A DNA stretch of 64,000 nt from Macrostomum hystrix (GCA_950097015.1 CATNEN010000034.1:6510001-6574000), one strand, 5' to 3'; shown: positions 54,423 through 63,823, counted from the stretch's first letter. Notes: generated from the sequence alone by a model not told the origin. Made by a program: numbers and translations.

Positions 54423-55321
54423 CAGGGGTCGGCAAACTTATTAGCTGGCGGGCCAAAGAGAGAATCTAAAAGACGACAGCGGGCCGCTTTGATTATAGAA
54501 ATATTATATAAGGGCGAGATAAGACACGGGAGAGATGAGACACGGGAGAGCTGAGACACGAGAGAGATGAGACACGGGAGAGCTGAGACACGGGAGAGAT
54601 GAGACACGGGAGAGGTGAGACACGGGAGAGATGAGACACGGGAGAGATGAGACACGGGAGAGATGAGACACGGGAGAGATGAGACACGGGAGAGATGAGA
54701 CACGGGAGAGATGAGACACGGGAGAGATGAGACACGGGAGAGATGAGACACGGGAGAGATGAGACACGGGAGAGGTGAGACTCGGGAGAGATGAGATACG
54801 GGAGAGCTGAGACACGGGAGAGCTGAGACACGAGAGAGATGAGACACGGGAGAGCTGAGACACGGGAGAGCTGAGACACGGGAGAGATGAGACACGGGAG
54901 AGATGAGACACGGGAGAGATGAGATACGGGAGAGATGAGACACGGGAGAGATGGGACACGGGAGAGATGAGACACGGGAGAGATGAGACACGGGAGAGGT
55001 GAGACTCGGGAGAGATGAGATACGGGAGAGCTGAGACACGGGAGAGCTGAGACACGAGAGAGATGAGACACGGGAGAGCTGAGACACGGGAGAGATGAGA
55101 CACGGGAGAGATGAGATACGGGAGAGATGAGACACGGGAGAGATGAGATACGGGAGAGGTGAGACACGGGAGAGGTGAGACTCGGGAGAGATGAGACACG
55201 GGAGAGATGAGACACGGGAGAGATGAGACAGGATACTATAGGTGTTGGAAAGGGCAACGGGCCGGATTTGGGAGCTTCGAGGGCCGCATCTGGCCCGCGG
55301 GCCGGAGTTTGCCGACCCCTG
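54423..55321. mobile_element. Non-autonomous hAT (Charlie-like) element with internal minisatellite
   Basis: Perfect 16-bp TIR CAGGGGTCGGCAAACT and perfect 8-bp TSD ATATATAG (54415-54422, 55322-55329). Confidence 0.93.
54520..55230. repeat. 16-bp minisatellite (GAGACACGGGAGAGAT) inside the hAT element
   Basis: Tandem array; source of three LSRVSSLPCLISPVSH repeat ORFs. Confidence 0.97.
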
Positions 55322-55437
55322 ATATATAGGGACGTCTTTATTCCCAATTCTTTCGCCTGTAACTAAAATGAATATAACTAACAACAATATCCACCCTTCT
55401 GTTGCAGGTGGCAGAGCTAGCCTTGTTGGCGCAAGCA

Positions 55438-56988
55438 ATGCAGGTCATCAGCGATTATGAGCAGCGACGGTTATCAAGAATGGCTGAGAATGACAGGTTA
55501 ATTGACGAGCTATTTGGTACTTGTGTAACTGCCAAACTGCCACAGCCGAAGCGAGCTGCAAATGGTAGTGGAAAAGCTGACAATGTCTCTAGACAAAAGC
55601 AGCCTAGGGCCTGTACTATGCAGAAGAAGCGCCAGAGAAGTGACAGCGACAGCGACCCAGATTACCAACCTGCCGTCAAGACTAAAAAGTCTGCTGCAGG
55701 TTCTGTCAAAAAGACTGCTGCTGCTGCTGCTGCTGCTGCACCTGGGAGCGTACCGCGCAGAGCACCGCCTCGTCACAGCAAAACTGCCTGTGTTTATACG
55801 GAAAGCGAAGAGCGGCGATCCCTCTACTGTTACGACTGTGCCAACGAGGTGTTCCGCGACTGCTGCCAGCAGCACCAGCGCTGGATTGCCAACCGAATAC
55901 CTGATGGATTGGGCACTGTGGAAAACTTTGCCGACCTCACCTTGCCAGAGGGAATGCGTATCTGCCGATCCGCTGTGAGCAGATTCGCTGGCAGGGGAGT
56001 ATGGACTGAGGCTGCGATCCCTCGCGGCTCGATTTTCGGACCCTACCTGGGCAAGCGGATTTCCGACAAGGCAGCTGCCGAGGCCTCGTCCTACGCCTGG
56101 GAGATCCGATGCGAGGCCGGAACGCCACAGCGCAAAGAGTGGGTGGATGCCGCTGACAAGCGATATTCCAATTGGATGCGCTACGTGAACTGTAGCCGTA
56201 ATCTGTGCGAGCAGAACATGATTGCCTTCCAATGGGACAATGATGTGTACTACATTGCCATTCGCAACATCAGTCCCGGCCACGAGCTGCTTGTTTACTA
56301 TGGCGACGAAATGGCAAAGTTATACAACATAGTGGCCGAAGAGGGCGACAGCGTCAGCGATCGACCGCTGTTCGAGGAGACGGACGTTTTACAGACTGGC
56401 GGCGATCGGTCGTGCGGCTTTTGCGACAAAACTTTCAAGAGCAAATCAAGCAAGATGTGGCACGTCAGGACTGTTCACCTGTTGGAGAGGCACCACGTGT
56501 GCTCTCAGTGCGATGCTCGATTTCGAAGTGAAAGTGGTCTGGATGTTCACATGCGCACTCACACTGGCGAGCGACCGTTTGCCTGCAGTCTGTGTGAGAA
56601 GGCCTTCACTAAGAGCGGCAATCTCAAGACACACATGCGCACTCACACTGGCGAGCGACCGTTTGCCTGCAGTCTGTGTGAGAAGGCCTTCACTGAGAGC
56701 GGCAGTCTCAAGACACACATGCGCACTCACACTGGCGAGCGACCGTTTGCCTGCAGTCTGTGTGAGAAGGCCTTCACTGAGAGCGGCAGTCTCAAGACAC
56801 ACATGCGCACTCACACTGGCGAGCGACCGTTTGCCTGCAGTCTGTGTGAGAAGGCCTTCACTAAGAGCGGCAATCTCAAGACACACATGCGCACTCACAC
56901 TGGCGAGCGACCGTTTGCCTGCAGTCTGTGTGAGAAGGCCTTCACTGAGAGCGGCCATCTCAAGAGACACATGCGCACTCAGCACTAA
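55438..56988 (+). CDS. PRDM9-like: PRDM9-like histone methyltransferase: KRAB-like helix, SSXRD-like motif, Zn knuckle, PR/SET, 7 C2H2 fingers (last 5 an 84-bp minisatellite)
   Basis: LYCYDC..CCQQH knuckle and PR/SET (GRGVW, FGPYLG, NWMRYVNC, EQNMIAFQ, YYIAIR, ELLVYYG), followed by TGERPF-linked fingers. Single uninterrupted ORF with an acceptor-like TTGCAG at 55402-55407, so an upstream exon is possible. Orthology to PRDM9 is not proven. Confidence 0.88.
   Translation: MQVISDYEQRRLSRMAENDRLIDELFGTCVTAKLPQPKRAANGSGKADNVSRQKQPRACTMQKKRQRSDSDSDPDYQPAVKTKKSAAGSVKKTAAAAAAAAPGSVPRRAPPRHSKTACVYTESEERRSLYCYDCANEVFRDCCQQHQRWIANRIPDGLGTVENFADLTLPEGMRICRSAVSRFAGRGVWTEAAIPRGSIFGPYLGKRISDKAAAEASSYAWEIRCEAGTPQRKEWVDAADKRYSNWMRYVNCSRNLCEQNMIAFQWDNDVYYIAIRNISPGHELLVYYGDEMAKLYNIVAEEGDSVSDRPLFEETDVLQTGGDRSCGFCDKTFKSKSSKMWHVRTVHLLERHHVCSQCDARFRSESGLDVHMRTHTGERPFACSLCEKAFTKSGNLKTHMRTHTGERPFACSLCEKAFTESGSLKTHMRTHTGERPFACSLCEKAFTESGSLKTHMRTHTGERPFACSLCEKAFTKSGNLKTHMRTHTGERPFACSLCEKAFTESGHLKRHMRTQH
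56548..56982 (+). repeat. 84-bp coding minisatellite (zinc-finger array)
   Basis: Five units identical except at three codons. Confidence 0.98.
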
Positions 56989-59241: not shown

Positions 59242-62200
59242 ATGCAGTCGCAGTCTAACTCGTATCGAAATCTCAGCTACAGCTCCCTAGTTAGAGTTGA
59301 CGACATGCAGCAGCAGCAGCAGCAGTCGCTTGACAGCCTGTTCCAACCTGAGAACATTGTGGTCAAACAGCAGATGCTCAGCAGAGAAGAGGTGCTCATT
59401 GGTGTCGGCCGTATCCTGGACTGGGTGCACGGACCGGGCACCAAACTGCTGGACTCCCAGCGCGAGCTGCCGACTAACTTCACGGAGGCCGAGCAAATTC
59501 GAAAAAATCACGAACAATTCGAGTTTAAGTGTATGGTAAGACGGATTGCTACGCCTTTATTTTTCATCCAATCAGAAACCTAATGCGCCACCCAGAAGCC
59601 AATTCCATCCAATCAGAGACTGACTCAGTCACTCCGAAGCCATGCAATCCCATCCAATCAGAGACCGACTCAGTCAGTCAGAAGCCAGTTCCATCCAATC
59701 AGAGACTGACTCAGTCACTCCGAGGCTAATTCCATCCAATCAGAGACTGACTCAGTCACTCCGAAGCCATGCAATCCCATCCAATCAGAGACTGACTCAG
59801 TCACTCCGAAGCCAATTCCATGAAACAGTGAGAGTTACCAAAGCGCCACTAAAACCCTCAGCAAGCGCTCGCCAATTACGCCAGCCTTCGCGATGTTCGC
59901 ACAAACGACAACGAGCTGGCCGAGCGCCTAGAAAAGCTCGAGATCACCATCCAGGACTTCCTCCGCCGGCTTCAATCACGTCGTCAGGCTGTGGTCTCGT
60001 TGTACACCTTCTTTCGGCTGCGTCGCGACCTCGACGGTTATTTCCAGGAAATCGCCGACCTGCTAGTCTGGTCACAGAAGCGGCAGCACGAGCACGATGG
60101 GCAGCGCATTGAAGACGCGGAGCACTACCTGCGCCAGGTGGAGAAGCTGCTCCGCTTCGGTGAGAGCCTCTATCAGCAGCTGTGTGCTGAGGCTGAGCGA
60201 ATCCGATTAGTCGTCACCTCGCAGGAGATACTCGGTATCGTTGCGGCGCGGCTCGGCGAAGCCAAGCCCCAGCTAGCCAAGCAGTTGGAGACGCTTAAAA
60301 TCCGCCTGCTGGAGACTCGAAGGCGGCTGCAACTGTTGGTGTACGAGAGGGACACCAACCAGACCATAGCCTGGCTTGAAGACATCATCAGTGCAGTGCT
60401 GGACACTTATCTGGGCTATTGTATTGGTAAGACGCCGATGGAGTCGCAGCAGATATTGCTGCAGCATCGCACCCTGCAGGCCAAGTCCCAGGTAGGCGTT
60501 TTTCGGATTGGGTTAAGGGTGAGATGGGTGGAGGGTTAGGAGCAGGGAGTGAGTTGATTGTTGGACGGAAGGTCCGGGGCAGGGAGTGAGGTGGTTGGTG
60601 GACGGAAGGTCCGGGGCAGGGAGTGAGGTGGTTGGTGGACGGAAGGTCCGGGGCAGGAAGTGAGGTGGTTGGTGGACGGAAGGTCCGGGGCAGGGAGTGA
60701 GGTGGTTGGTGGACGGAAGGTCTGCGGCAGGGAGTGAGGTGGTTGGTGGACGGAAGGTCGTGCGTAGGGAGTGAGGTCGCTGGTGGATTGTTGGTTAGCG
60801 GCAGGGCAGATGGCCACTCGATGGGTCGAGCTGTTTGAGGGATTGAAAAATTCGGGGAAGAGAAGAAGGGCTTTTTCTCAAAATCAATGAAAACGATCGT
60901 AAAAAAACTATTAGGAAACCTACGACTGCGGCCTGGAGCTGATATCCGCTCTGACAAAGATCTACAGGTCTCAGGGCGCCAGCACAGAGAACTGCTCTGT
61001 GATGCGCACCGACCTCGAGATGAACTGGAGACGCCTGAACGACATTCTGATTGAGATGGGCGATCGATATGCCACCGCGGACGCCTTCTATGAAAACGTC
61101 GATCTGGTGAGTAGTGTCTTTTGTTTCGTTTCGCTAGTGCAGACCATGATCAATTAGATAACATTAAACATTAAACTGTGGGATAACGAGGACATTGCAA
61201 GGCAATAAAAAATAACAATTCAGTAAACAAACCCGATTCAGATATTGAAACTGAGAGTAACGATTTTCATAATTTCTAGCGAAAATTTTTGGCACGAAAG
61301 AGGGCCGGCAACTAGTAATACCTAACGTACCCAACGTATTTTTAATTACCCAACGTTCTCTAACGTTCATAACGTACTCTAAAGTTCCCAACGTACTCTA
61401 AAGTTCCCAACGTACTCATGTGTACCCAACGTACTCTAAAGTTCCCAACGTAATCATGTGTACCCAACGTACTCTAAAGTTCCCAACGTACTCATGTGTA
61501 CCCAACGTACTCTAAAGTTCCTAACGTACTCATGTGTACCCAACGTACTCATGTGTACCCAACGTACTCATGTGTACCCAACGTACTCATGTGTACCCAA
61601 CGTACTCATGTGTACCCAACGTACTCATGTGTACCCAACGTACTCATGTGTACCCAACGTACTCATGTGTACCCAACGTACTCATGTGTACCCAACGTAC
61701 TCATGTGTACCCAACGTACTCATGTGTACCCAACGTACTCATGTGTACCCAACGTACTTTTTTCTATCCATCGTACTCTATCTCGCATTTGTACACAATG
61801 TCTCCTATACGTTCTCTAAAATTCGACGAAACACGACAGAACCTGGAGCGCATCGAGCGACTCATCCTTCTTATCTGTCGCGACCTGGACACCGGAATGT
61901 CGCTGGACGACGTACGCAAGACCTACGCCGCAGAGCGGGACGAAATTGTCAAAGCGTACGAGAGCACCAAGCGAATTGGTGTCGGTCTGATGGAGCGAAT
62001 CCAGTTACCTGTTGCCAACCTGTGAGGCACTACTATTAGTAGAAATAAAGTTTTTTCTCGATTTCTGCTCGCATTAGACTATTTCGAATGCAATTCCCTT
62101 CCAGACCCGAAACTGTCGATCAGAAGATGATCGACCAGGTGCAGGACATAATCAAGGTCAAGCTGTTCACGTTGTGGTTGAAAATACGTGAACTATACTA

Positions 62201-63823
62201 CTACCTTGGCCAGGTGATTGAGATTTCAGAGGTCACTGAGCGATGGCAAGTTATCAGAGTCACAATTGACAAGGTTTGCGGCATTTTTCGCTGTTTCTTT
62301 AATCAGATTACATTCTTTGTGAAGTGCAATCAGATTTCAATCAACTGCAATCAGATTTCAATCAACTGCAATCAGATTTCAATCAACTGCAATCAGATTC
62401 CAATCAACTGCAATCAGATTTCAATCAACTGCAATCAGATTTCAATCAACTGCAATCAGATTTCAATCAACTGCAATCAGATTTCAATCAACTGCAATCA
62501 GATTTCAATCAACTGCAATCAGATTTCAATCAACTGCAATCAGATTTCAATCAACTGCAATCAGATTTCAATCAACTGCAATCAGATTTCAATCAACTGC
62601 AATCAGATTTCAATCAACTGCAATCAGATTCCAATCAACTGCAATCAGATTTCAATCAACTGCAATCAGATTCCAATCAACTGCAATCAGATTTCAATCA
62701 ACTGCAATCAGATTCCAATCAACTGCAATCAGATTCCAATCAACTGCAATCAGATTCCAATCAACTGCAATCAGATTCTAATCAACTGCAATCAGATTCC
62801 AATCAACTGCAATCAGATTTCATTTAGCCCATTACATGTAACCTGTGAAGTAGCCTTTCGTCAGACTCGCATCCCATTCTCCCAATCAGTTCTACGACCG
62901 GCTGCTTCACTGGGAGGCTCGCTGGCAGGAGGCCCGCAGCCTGCCGTTCACCCTGGCCGAAGCTCAAGCGCTGCTCGATGAGCATCGTCGTGCCGCGGAG
63001 GAGATCGGCAGCTCGTGGGAGCAGCTGCTGGCGGACCTGGCCGCAATGGCCCTCGATCCACAAGTTGGCTCGCTGGCTGAGCAGGTGCGTGGCTGCTAAA
63101 AGTACTGAAATTTCTCAATTTGAATTGGTGCCCAAAGTCAGCAGTTAAGGTTTTGTTAATCTGCCTCTAGAAAATTGAATGCCTGAGGTTGTCGGCTTTC
63201 ATTGTTATTTATTTTGGATTGATTAAATTGTCATTTTTTCAAATTGAATTAATATGGATTAACCATGGAAGTTTGTACAGACCAAAGTTAAGTTGTACTT
63301 GTCACGATTGTCTTCAACAAGAATCGTTGAATATCTCGACGATGCTGACATCGGACGGCTTTGAAAGTTAGTTCATCGTAAACGGCGGACAATTTTGATT
63401 CAGATAGCGGACTTTCACGAAAATCGGTCATTCTGTTTGGGAGCAATCGCGAAATAGGCAGTGGGTTTTTGAAATACCCCCCTTTCACCAGGTGGAAAAT
63501 AGCGTGGTATTTCTACTGTTTAGATTCAACTTGGCCCTACTAACAGTAGGATCTAGGCAAATGATCATCCTTTTTTTATAAATTGACCCAAGGCTCGCTC
63601 GGATGCGCAGCGCCGCATGGAGGAATGGCAGCGGCGTTGGGACCGGCGCCAGGCCGAGCTGGACATGCGCCTCCGGCTGCTCTTGCGCCTGCGAGACCTG
63701 TCCAACGAAGTCGAGGACAACCGCAGTCGGCTGTCCGAGCTGAAGACTGAGCGCACGGTGACCAAGGTCGGGCCGGTGTCCGACACGGCTGCCGATGTCG
63801 CCACTCTGCAACGGGGCGTGGCG
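59242..63823 (+). CDS. Spectrin-repeat protein (SESTD1/Trio-type repeats), 5' part, continuing beyond the window; exons 59242-59535, 59862-60491, 60915-61105, ~61840-62021, 62105-62273, 62890-63084, 63593-63823
   Basis: Spectrin-like helices (ILDWVHGPGTKLL..HEQF, TIAWLEDII, LLHWEARW, EEWQRRWDRR). GT/AG junctions are phase-compatible; the acceptor of exon 4 is uncertain. Confidence 0.8.
59560..59820. repeat. About 44-bp intronic minisatellite (CCATCCAATCAGAGACTGACTCAGTCACTCCGAAGCC...)
   Basis: Spectrin gene intron 1. Confidence 0.9.
60545..60790. repeat. 37-bp intronic minisatellite (GGACGGAAGGTCCGGGGCAGGGAGTGAGGTGGTTGGT)
   Basis: Spectrin gene intron 2. Confidence 0.93.
61365..61760. repeat. 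19-bp intronic minisatellite (CCCAACGTACTCATGTGTA)
   Basis: Spectrin gene intron 3. Confidence 0.95.
62325..62822. repeat. 21-bp intronic minisatellite (TGCAATCAGATTTCAATCAAC)
   Basis: Spectrin gene intron 5. Confidence 0.96.

Follow-up and report, generated by a model that had tools for sequence, protein, structure and literature searches.

Hotspot placement by PRDM9 in mammals requires both of its N-terminal modules, KRAB and SSXRD. Outside the vertebrates, PRDM9-directed recombination is an open question, for which an intact KRAB-SSXRD-SET-ZnF architecture together with a fast-evolving finger array is the accepted proxy. A locus of the flatworm Macrostomum hystrix, contained in a stretch of 64,000 nucleotides (GCA_950097015.1 CATNEN010000034.1:6510001-6574000; hereafter the window), bears on this question. 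A first-pass annotation had matched a helix upstream of its PR/SET domain to the KRAB core and a pre-knuckle stretch to SSXRD, and had suggested that the locus may encode a full-architecture PRDM9. Here we ask whether these two stretches are related to KRAB and SSXRD, and how much of either module is left. The best explanation, to which we assign a probability of roughly 0.65, is that the N-terminus descends from a canonical PRDM9 N-terminus of which three short islands remain, the mRNA being truncated at a probable spliced-leader (SL) acceptor.

The window holds one long open reading frame (ORF), at 55402-56988 on the + strand (start 55402/55408, 526-528 codons). It belongs to an expressed, intronless gene whose product joins a PRDM9-type zinc knuckle and a PR/SET domain with three catalytic tyrosines to seven C2H2 fingers (Table 1; residues are numbered from residue 1 = V at 55408). 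Over the whole ORF, Pfam reports PRDM2_PR/SET (1.2e-34) and zf-C2H2 in 7 stretches. The knuckle-to-SET region matches the PRDM9 chains 6nm4, 4c1q and 4ijd in the PDB at E ~1e-31, against only 1.5e-21 for PRDM11, and the AlphaFold model superposes on 4c1q with a TM of 0.90 (Foldseek). As is characteristic of the PRDM9 family, the PR/SET domain is nearest to PRDM9 among PRDMs and has a C-x2-C...C-x2-H knuckle directly upstream, of which C141, C144 and C152 occupy invariant columns of a MAFFT alignment. When aligned to 4ijd, 4c1q and 6nm4, the segments SYAWEI, VYYIAI and LLVYYG stand opposite GYSWLI, IFYRTC and LLVWYG. Tyrosines are present at all three catalytic positions (Y276, Y341 and Y357 in literature numbering), their numbering being assigned via sequence context and not structure. 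The nearest relatives are M. lignano entries named PRDM9 (68-72% identity), followed by sea-urchin PRDM7/9 at 34%; the M. lignano orthologue (P0162, PAA57651.1, 528 aa) is likewise intronless. Judged by sequence and modelled fold, in both of which the knuckle and PR/SET match PRDM9 best, the locus is a PRDM9-family gene of a Macrostomum flatworm.

Table 1. Features of the gene in the window, with the residues compared with the M. lignano orthologue and their identity.
Feature	Position	Strand	Residues compared	Identical to M. lignano	Basis or remark
Polypyrimidine tract and AG splice acceptor (ccacccttctgttgcag)	55392..55407	+			AG = 55406-55407; exon start 55408
N-terminal extension VAELALLAQAMQV, unconserved	55408..55446	+	1-13	0/13	AF2 helix 2-13
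Putative remnant of ancestral KRAB-A C-terminal helix ISDYEQRRLSRMAENDRLIDELFG (residues 14-37)	55447..55518	+	14-37	17/24 (71%), gap-free	aKRAB HMM, hhalign, conservation, AF2
Linker			38-62	11/30	
Basic stretch and acidic motif RQKQPRACTMQKKRQRSDSDSDPDYQP, likely counterpart of PRDM9 'RKRK...DSDEEWxP'	55591..55671	+	62-88	23/27 (85%)	motif HMM, hhalign, conservation
Linker			89-116	7/34	
CTG microsatellite, poly-alanine run in unconserved linker	55715..55739	+			TRF
Degenerate SSXRD-like stretch VPRRAPPRHSKTACVYTESEERRS, adjoining zinc knuckle	55750..55821	+	117-138	14/22 (64%)	SSXRD HMM, conservation
Zinc knuckle and PR/SET, PRDM9-type, three catalytic tyrosines	55822..56337	+	139-310	137/172	PDB matches, Foldseek, Pfam
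Seven C2H2 zinc fingers	56413..56985	+			Pfam zf-C2H2

Relatives were gathered by an exhaustive HMMER search with residues 1-343, which returned 2139 proteins. The ancestral KRAB (aKRAB) was found in about 50 of the best 150 and in further cluster members, its carriers coming from mammals, fish, amphioxus, echinoderms, tick, bivalves, annelid and nemertean. Three HMMs were built from non-flatworm PRDM9s only (~45 proteins of other phyla), covering aKRAB (48 sequences, 56 positions), the basic/acidic 'RKRK...DSDEEWxP' motif (30 sequences, 28 positions) and SSXRD, taken as the 34 residues preceding the knuckle (44 sequences). As nulls we used 20000 composition-preserving shuffles and 891 six-frame chunks of the window.

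The helix ISDYEQRRLSRMAENDRLIDELF at 55447-55515 lies in the ORF frame, and HMMER and hhalign both place it in the PRDM9 KRAB register that had been proposed, with Y17 opposite W, E18 opposite E, R21 opposite R and N28 opposite N of the aKRAB profile. The aKRAB HMM aligns residues 11-28 with positions 19-36 of 56 at 4.6 bits, a score reached in 8 of the 20000 shuffles (p about 4e-4), and hhalign gives P 0.0026 for the KRAB helix. The corresponding E of 1.5e-3 comes from our own HMM with a search space of one sequence, and is to be read as such beside the E < 0.01 that the authors of PMC8835667 use with their aKRAB-A HMM. Relative to the KRAB-A helix consensus (W/Y)EK-x-R-x-x-N-x-K-x-NY-x-x-(M/L)-x-x-x-G(L), the window protein keeps Y17, E18, R21, N28 and G37; both flatworms carry R where the first, near-invariant N of the helix would stand, NY has become ND, and the terminal G is displaced by one residue. 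AF2 predicts helices at 2-13 and 16-36 (pLDDT 80-90), though the aKRAB rows of the alignment may have lent the N-terminus this confidence. In the urchin model, short helices at 10-13 and 18-23 are followed by a long aKRAB helix at 26-44, which starts at the same D of SDYE (S-D cap) as the window helix 16-36. We considered helix 2-13 as a stand-in for the lost half of KRAB-A and rejected it, its residues being missing in M. lignano. Foldseek with the whole model reported the SET domain alone, the two-helix N-terminus being too small for a meaningful fold search.

The remainder of KRAB is absent from the protein. The first half of KRAB-A (F-DI--YF--EEW, profile positions 1-18) is unmatched, and an HMM of this half gives no score above -0.9 bits when run over six frames of the window (55 kb upstream included) or of 13.6 kb around the M. 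lignano gene (6 kb upstream). The KRAB-B PxxFM is also absent: the sequence following the helix, TCVTAKLPQPKR, contains no FM, and column P42 is unmatched. The notion of a full-architecture PRDM9 is therefore abandoned, given that aKRAB positions 19-36 of 56 are all that is matched, PxxFM is missing and the mRNA begins 13 codons upstream of the helix. Exon mapping in Pecten, Acanthaster and Lineus places the whole of KRAB-A in one exon with an intron after it. Since KRAB-A is a single exon elsewhere, the flatworm 5' end represents a break inside the domain and not an old intron boundary; a derivation of this end from an ancestral KRAB intron acceptor turned SL acceptor was rejected on the same grounds, as the intron in these species follows KRAB-A.

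Further downstream, the acidic motif HMM scores 4.1 bits over residues 72-83 (positions 4-15 of 28), a score reached by 90 of the 20000 shuffles, and hhalign sets SDSDSDPDYQP opposite dSDEEWtP with P 0.0018. The SSXRD HMM scores 6.5 bits over residues 121-135 (positions 15-29 of 34), reached by 58 of the 20000 shuffles. Here the core Y130-T-E, with its near-invariant Y130, is kept, as is the position before the knuckle; the start reads PRR..PPR without Y instead of (R)Y-(P/S)-x-R, and the tail SEERRS instead of P-x-DDD. The stretch RRAPPRHSKTACVYTESEERRSLYC (55756-55830, in the ORF frame), proposed as the SSXRD-to-knuckle junction, thus resembles SSXRD in the Y-x-E core and its position and departs from it in the RY start and the PDDD tail. 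AF2 predicts disorder from 42 to 132, with pLDDT below 50 for linker residues 89-116. The disordered part includes the SSXRD-like stretch.

The three matches are individually weak and stand in canonical order. Their summed score is 15.2 bits, compared with maxima of 9.1 in the 20000 shuffles and 2.8 in the 891 six-frame chunks, among which the single scores were reached by 1 (aKRAB), 2 (acidic motif) and 1 (SSXRD). Hhalign repeats all three placements (P 2e-3 to 1.5e-2), with probabilities of only 3-15%, and in an unguided MAFFT alignment (42 sequences) all three motifs fall into register, with the invariant N28 and the near-invariant E18, R21, G37 and Y130 kept and N24, P42, Y120 and D136 lost. 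No single match is strong enough to survive a database-wide search, each being at twilight level. A word-index search with residues 1-138 found no relative, the same search with the urchin aKRAB returned echinoids only, and an ESM Atlas feature search with residues 1-138 gave no usable match. Pfam KRAB and SSXRD find no match in the whole ORF or the N-terminus of the window protein, nor do they match the sea-urchin protein (N-terminus AYFTAKEWAEISDYEKLRLKNIKENYEMMIEVGLKVSPPDFM), the accepted textbook carrier of aKRAB among invertebrates (PMC8835667). Pfam thus overlooks an accepted aKRAB and SSXRD, and its blank is uninformative for the flatworm. The similarity had been called weak from the outset, and at 4.6 and 6.5 bits, above chance, we agree. 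We also scored 76 pre-knuckle control segments, in which aKRAB scores of at least 4.6 bits came only from genuine aKRAB fragments; as a null drawn from real proteins this set was set aside for all but qualitative use, since it contains genuine aKRAB and SSXRD fragments.

Comparison with M. lignano adds a second line of evidence. The conserved islands of the N-terminus are exactly the three PRDM9-motif matches and no others; outside them identity is 0-37%, with indels (Table 1). Since three collinear motif matches coincide with three islands conserved in Macrostomum, we take the helix and the stretch before the knuckle to be, most probably, genuine but degenerate descendants of aKRAB-A and SSXRD, as read from the sequence, and the original identification survives in that form and not as complete domains. 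The M. lignano orthologue itself scores marginally (aKRAB 0.0 bits, p 0.046; SSXRD 3.8 bits, p 0.015; sum p 0.024), and for this reason the signal in the window protein may be partly luck. The M. lignano gene, intronless as it is, falls within the span of a different called gene, with a 372-aa product, which overruns both ends of the locus (L001:1-13587); an intron of a host gene may therefore contain it, unless the annotation is chimeric.

At the 5' end, an in-frame stop (55375-55377) lies upstream of the ORF. Contigs from four public runs of one 2020 study cover the ORF, and because they do so while leaving 55373-55406 uncovered (X2-X4), we regard them as derived from RNA. One contig (X1 record 6) is placed on 55407-55627 and carries 23 extra letters without genomic match. 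In M. lignano, ~30% of genes are trans-spliced to a 35-nt SL ending ...TTGCATG (PMC8629364), and the orthologue, MSATISSYE, begins directly after its own acceptor ttctag, where the gene model starts with ATG. The mRNA of the window gene probably starts in the same manner, at an SL site at the AG acceptor 55407/55408, with a leader that is inferred and not read. An SL AUG spliced to 55408 would fall in the reading frame; were it unused, translation would start at 55439, the first genomic ATG (MQVISDYE), inside the N-terminal extension. As the RNA contig begins at the acceptor, no further coding sequence is expected upstream.

How these observations are best explained depends on what is made of the weak scores and of the 5' end. 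The N-terminus could be a generic amphipathic helix followed by an ordinary charged linker, lineage-specific and unrelated to KRAB or SSXRD. Single scores of 4-7 bits, hhalign probabilities of 3-15%, an M. lignano aKRAB score at or near noise and blank results from Pfam, ESM Atlas and word search (residues 1-138) are all what such a chance resemblance would produce. It has more difficulty with three matches that occur in canonical order, correctly placed with respect to the knuckle and coinciding exactly with the conserved islands, with a summed score reached by 0 of 20000 shuffles, and with the 76 controls, where only genuine aKRAB fragments scored as high as the window helix. We consider chance rather unlikely, and descent from a canonical PRDM9 N-terminus to be the better account.

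Given such descent, the missing half of KRAB-A might still be encoded on an unrecognised upstream exon, joined by cis-splicing and the source of the 23 foreign letters, in which case aKRAB would be complete. The contig does carry unplaced letters 5' of 55407. This proposal nevertheless seems very improbable to us, as the first-half HMM stays at or below -0.9 bits across 55 kb upstream, and 6 kb upstream in M. lignano; KRAB-A is a single exon in Pecten, Acanthaster and Lineus, leaving no ancestral intron at the break; the M. lignano gene model begins with ATG at the acceptor; and, with ~30% of M. lignano genes SL trans-spliced, the last letter of the SL is G, in agreement with the contig (PMC8629364). 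A further possibility refines the descent of the N-terminus from a canonical PRDM9 and does not replace it: the locus may have arisen as a retrocopy, truncated at its 5' end, of a multi-exon PRDM9, and have gained a trans-splice acceptor afterwards. Such an origin would explain both the lack of introns, shared by the two Macrostomum species and set against 6-8 or more coding exons in Pecten, Acanthaster and Lineus, and a truncation point that falls inside what is a single exon in other phyla. We saw no remnant of poly-A, no target-site duplication and no parental multi-exon copy, but since a retrocopy event would be older than the divergence of the two species, such traces would have decayed. 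We put a retrocopy forward as a tentative possibility. Under the preferred reading, descent with three islands left, the homology is probably vestigial and the architecture truncated.

The locus can be compared with several known systems. The complete invertebrate PRDM9/PRDM7-like proteins of S. purpuratus, Asterias, Acanthaster, Pecten, Mytilus, Owenia and Lineus share with the flatworm a common order of elements, namely aKRAB helix, basic/acidic DSDEEW-P motif, SSXRD, zinc knuckle, PR/SET and C2H2 array, and the flatworm ISDYE-RL---EN mirrors their (M/I)SDYEKLRL-N-KEN. They score 40-100 bits for aKRAB and 35-50 bits for SSXRD, whereas the flatworm scores 4.6 and 6.5, and they possess the F-DI--YF--EEW half, PxxFM, a PDDD tail and multi-exon genes, none of which the flatworm has; in Pecten, Acanthaster and Lineus the part that is intronless in Macrostomum is spread over 6-8 or more coding exons. 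A complete lophotrochozoan PRDM9 would not have been new, since annotated PRDM9-like proteins with an aKRAB already exist for molluscs (Pecten, Mytilus, Saccostrea and Mactra), an annelid (Owenia) and a nemertean (Lineus), and aKRAB is listed in mussels (PMC8835667). The SSX-family SSXRD (PF09514) resembles the flatworm stretch in placing a basic, R-rich start before Y-x-E and acidic residues where a disordered arm ends, but differs in its RY-(P/S)-x-R start and acidic D-rich tail, and the flatworm has no match to the Pfam entry.

Truncated forms offer closer parallels. PRDM9 paralogues with truncated KRAB have been described, including a cnidarian 'kXSZ' class (bioRxiv 10.64898/2026.09.07.749791), which like the flatworm combine a partial KRAB with SSXRD, the SET catalytic tyrosines and a ZnF array; the 'k' forms of that preprint are without a whole KRAB exon, whereas the flatworm break falls inside the single KRAB-A exon. 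Proteins of Nematostella (P0100), Sycon (P0124) and Babylonia (P0064) likewise start at the second half of KRAB-A, with aKRAB scores of 20-49 bits against the flatworm's 4.6; these three and P0146 could represent genuine truncated paralogues or gene models whose start was called wrongly. Of all motifs compared, those of the flatworm are the most degenerate. The engineered mouse deltaKB1 allele restarts at M43 (MGEWEK...) and loses PRDM9 function and the CXXC1 interaction (PMC5688218). It keeps the same half of KRAB-A as the flatworm and loses the same half, but it is an engineered loss-of-function form, whereas the flatworm form occurs naturally, is expressed and has been conserved between species. 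In the passages of bioRxiv 10.64898/2026.09.07.749791 that report Baker et al. 2017, a 'complete', hotspot-competent PRDM9 is one with all four domains intact and with its co-evolving partners ZCWPW1 and ZCWPW2 encoded by the same genome; in the window gene KRAB is truncated and SSXRD degenerate. With half a KRAB as in the loss-of-function deltaKB1, and with fewer than four intact domains, the flatworm gene is thus not a full-architecture PRDM9, and a complete PRDM9 in a new clade is not what it shows.

The C-terminal array has a different character. Its last five fingers form an 84-bp minisatellite (56548-56986; 5.2 copies, 97% matches by TRF), a tandem C2H2 array encoded as a minisatellite being typical of the PRDM9 family. 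Within each species the fingers share one framework, which differs between the species (ERPFACSLCEKAFT vs EKPFSCSYCGKAFS; window 56548-56986 and L001:7000-7587), while the DNA-contact residues vary among fingers, and the arrays of the two Macrostomum species differ at contact positions. At the level of these repeat sequences, this pattern is the signature of concerted evolution.

Taken at face value, the gene splits the proxies for PRDM9 function: the SET domain and finger array look 'functional', KRAB is one helix, and SSXRD is barely recognisable. The fingers would be expected to bind DNA, and the PR/SET domain, its catalytic tyrosines intact, to methylate nearby H3. The N-terminal helix and the basic/acidic islands, which appear to be under purifying selection, may serve as short partner- or nucleosome-binding motifs within an otherwise disordered arm, with a putative link to the break machinery. 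That the Macrostomum protein is a working, hotspot-designating PRDM9 with only the second KRAB-A helix and a minimal SSXRD we regard as improbable. If true, it would be a natural counterpart of mouse deltaKB1 that still has a homogenised finger array varying at DNA-contact residues, and either the KRAB-A helix would be the minimal partner-binding unit of aKRAB or flatworm PRDM9 would reach the break machinery via a different partner. Macrostomum lignano is amenable to transgenesis and RNAi, and represents a tractable system for testing what is required of the N-terminal arm. A more general caution is that standard domain scans such as Pfam misclassify invertebrate PRDM9s in both directions.

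Other repeats lie near the gene. Directly upstream of it, at 54512-55230, is a 16-bp minisatellite (GGGAGAGATGAGACAC, ~45 copies, 93% matches) that yields long spurious minus-strand ORFs. Between this and the gene, ~80 bp upstream of the acceptor, a short element at 55241-55328 is found in dozens of RNA contigs with summed depths in the thousands and with flanks that differ on both sides; it is a dispersed repeat of high copy number that is transcribed or lies embedded in many transcripts. Two more coding-looking minisatellites, whose repeats translate as YPTYSCVPNVLMCTQRTHV and NQISINC, occur downstream at 61458-62981 in or beside + strand ORFs.
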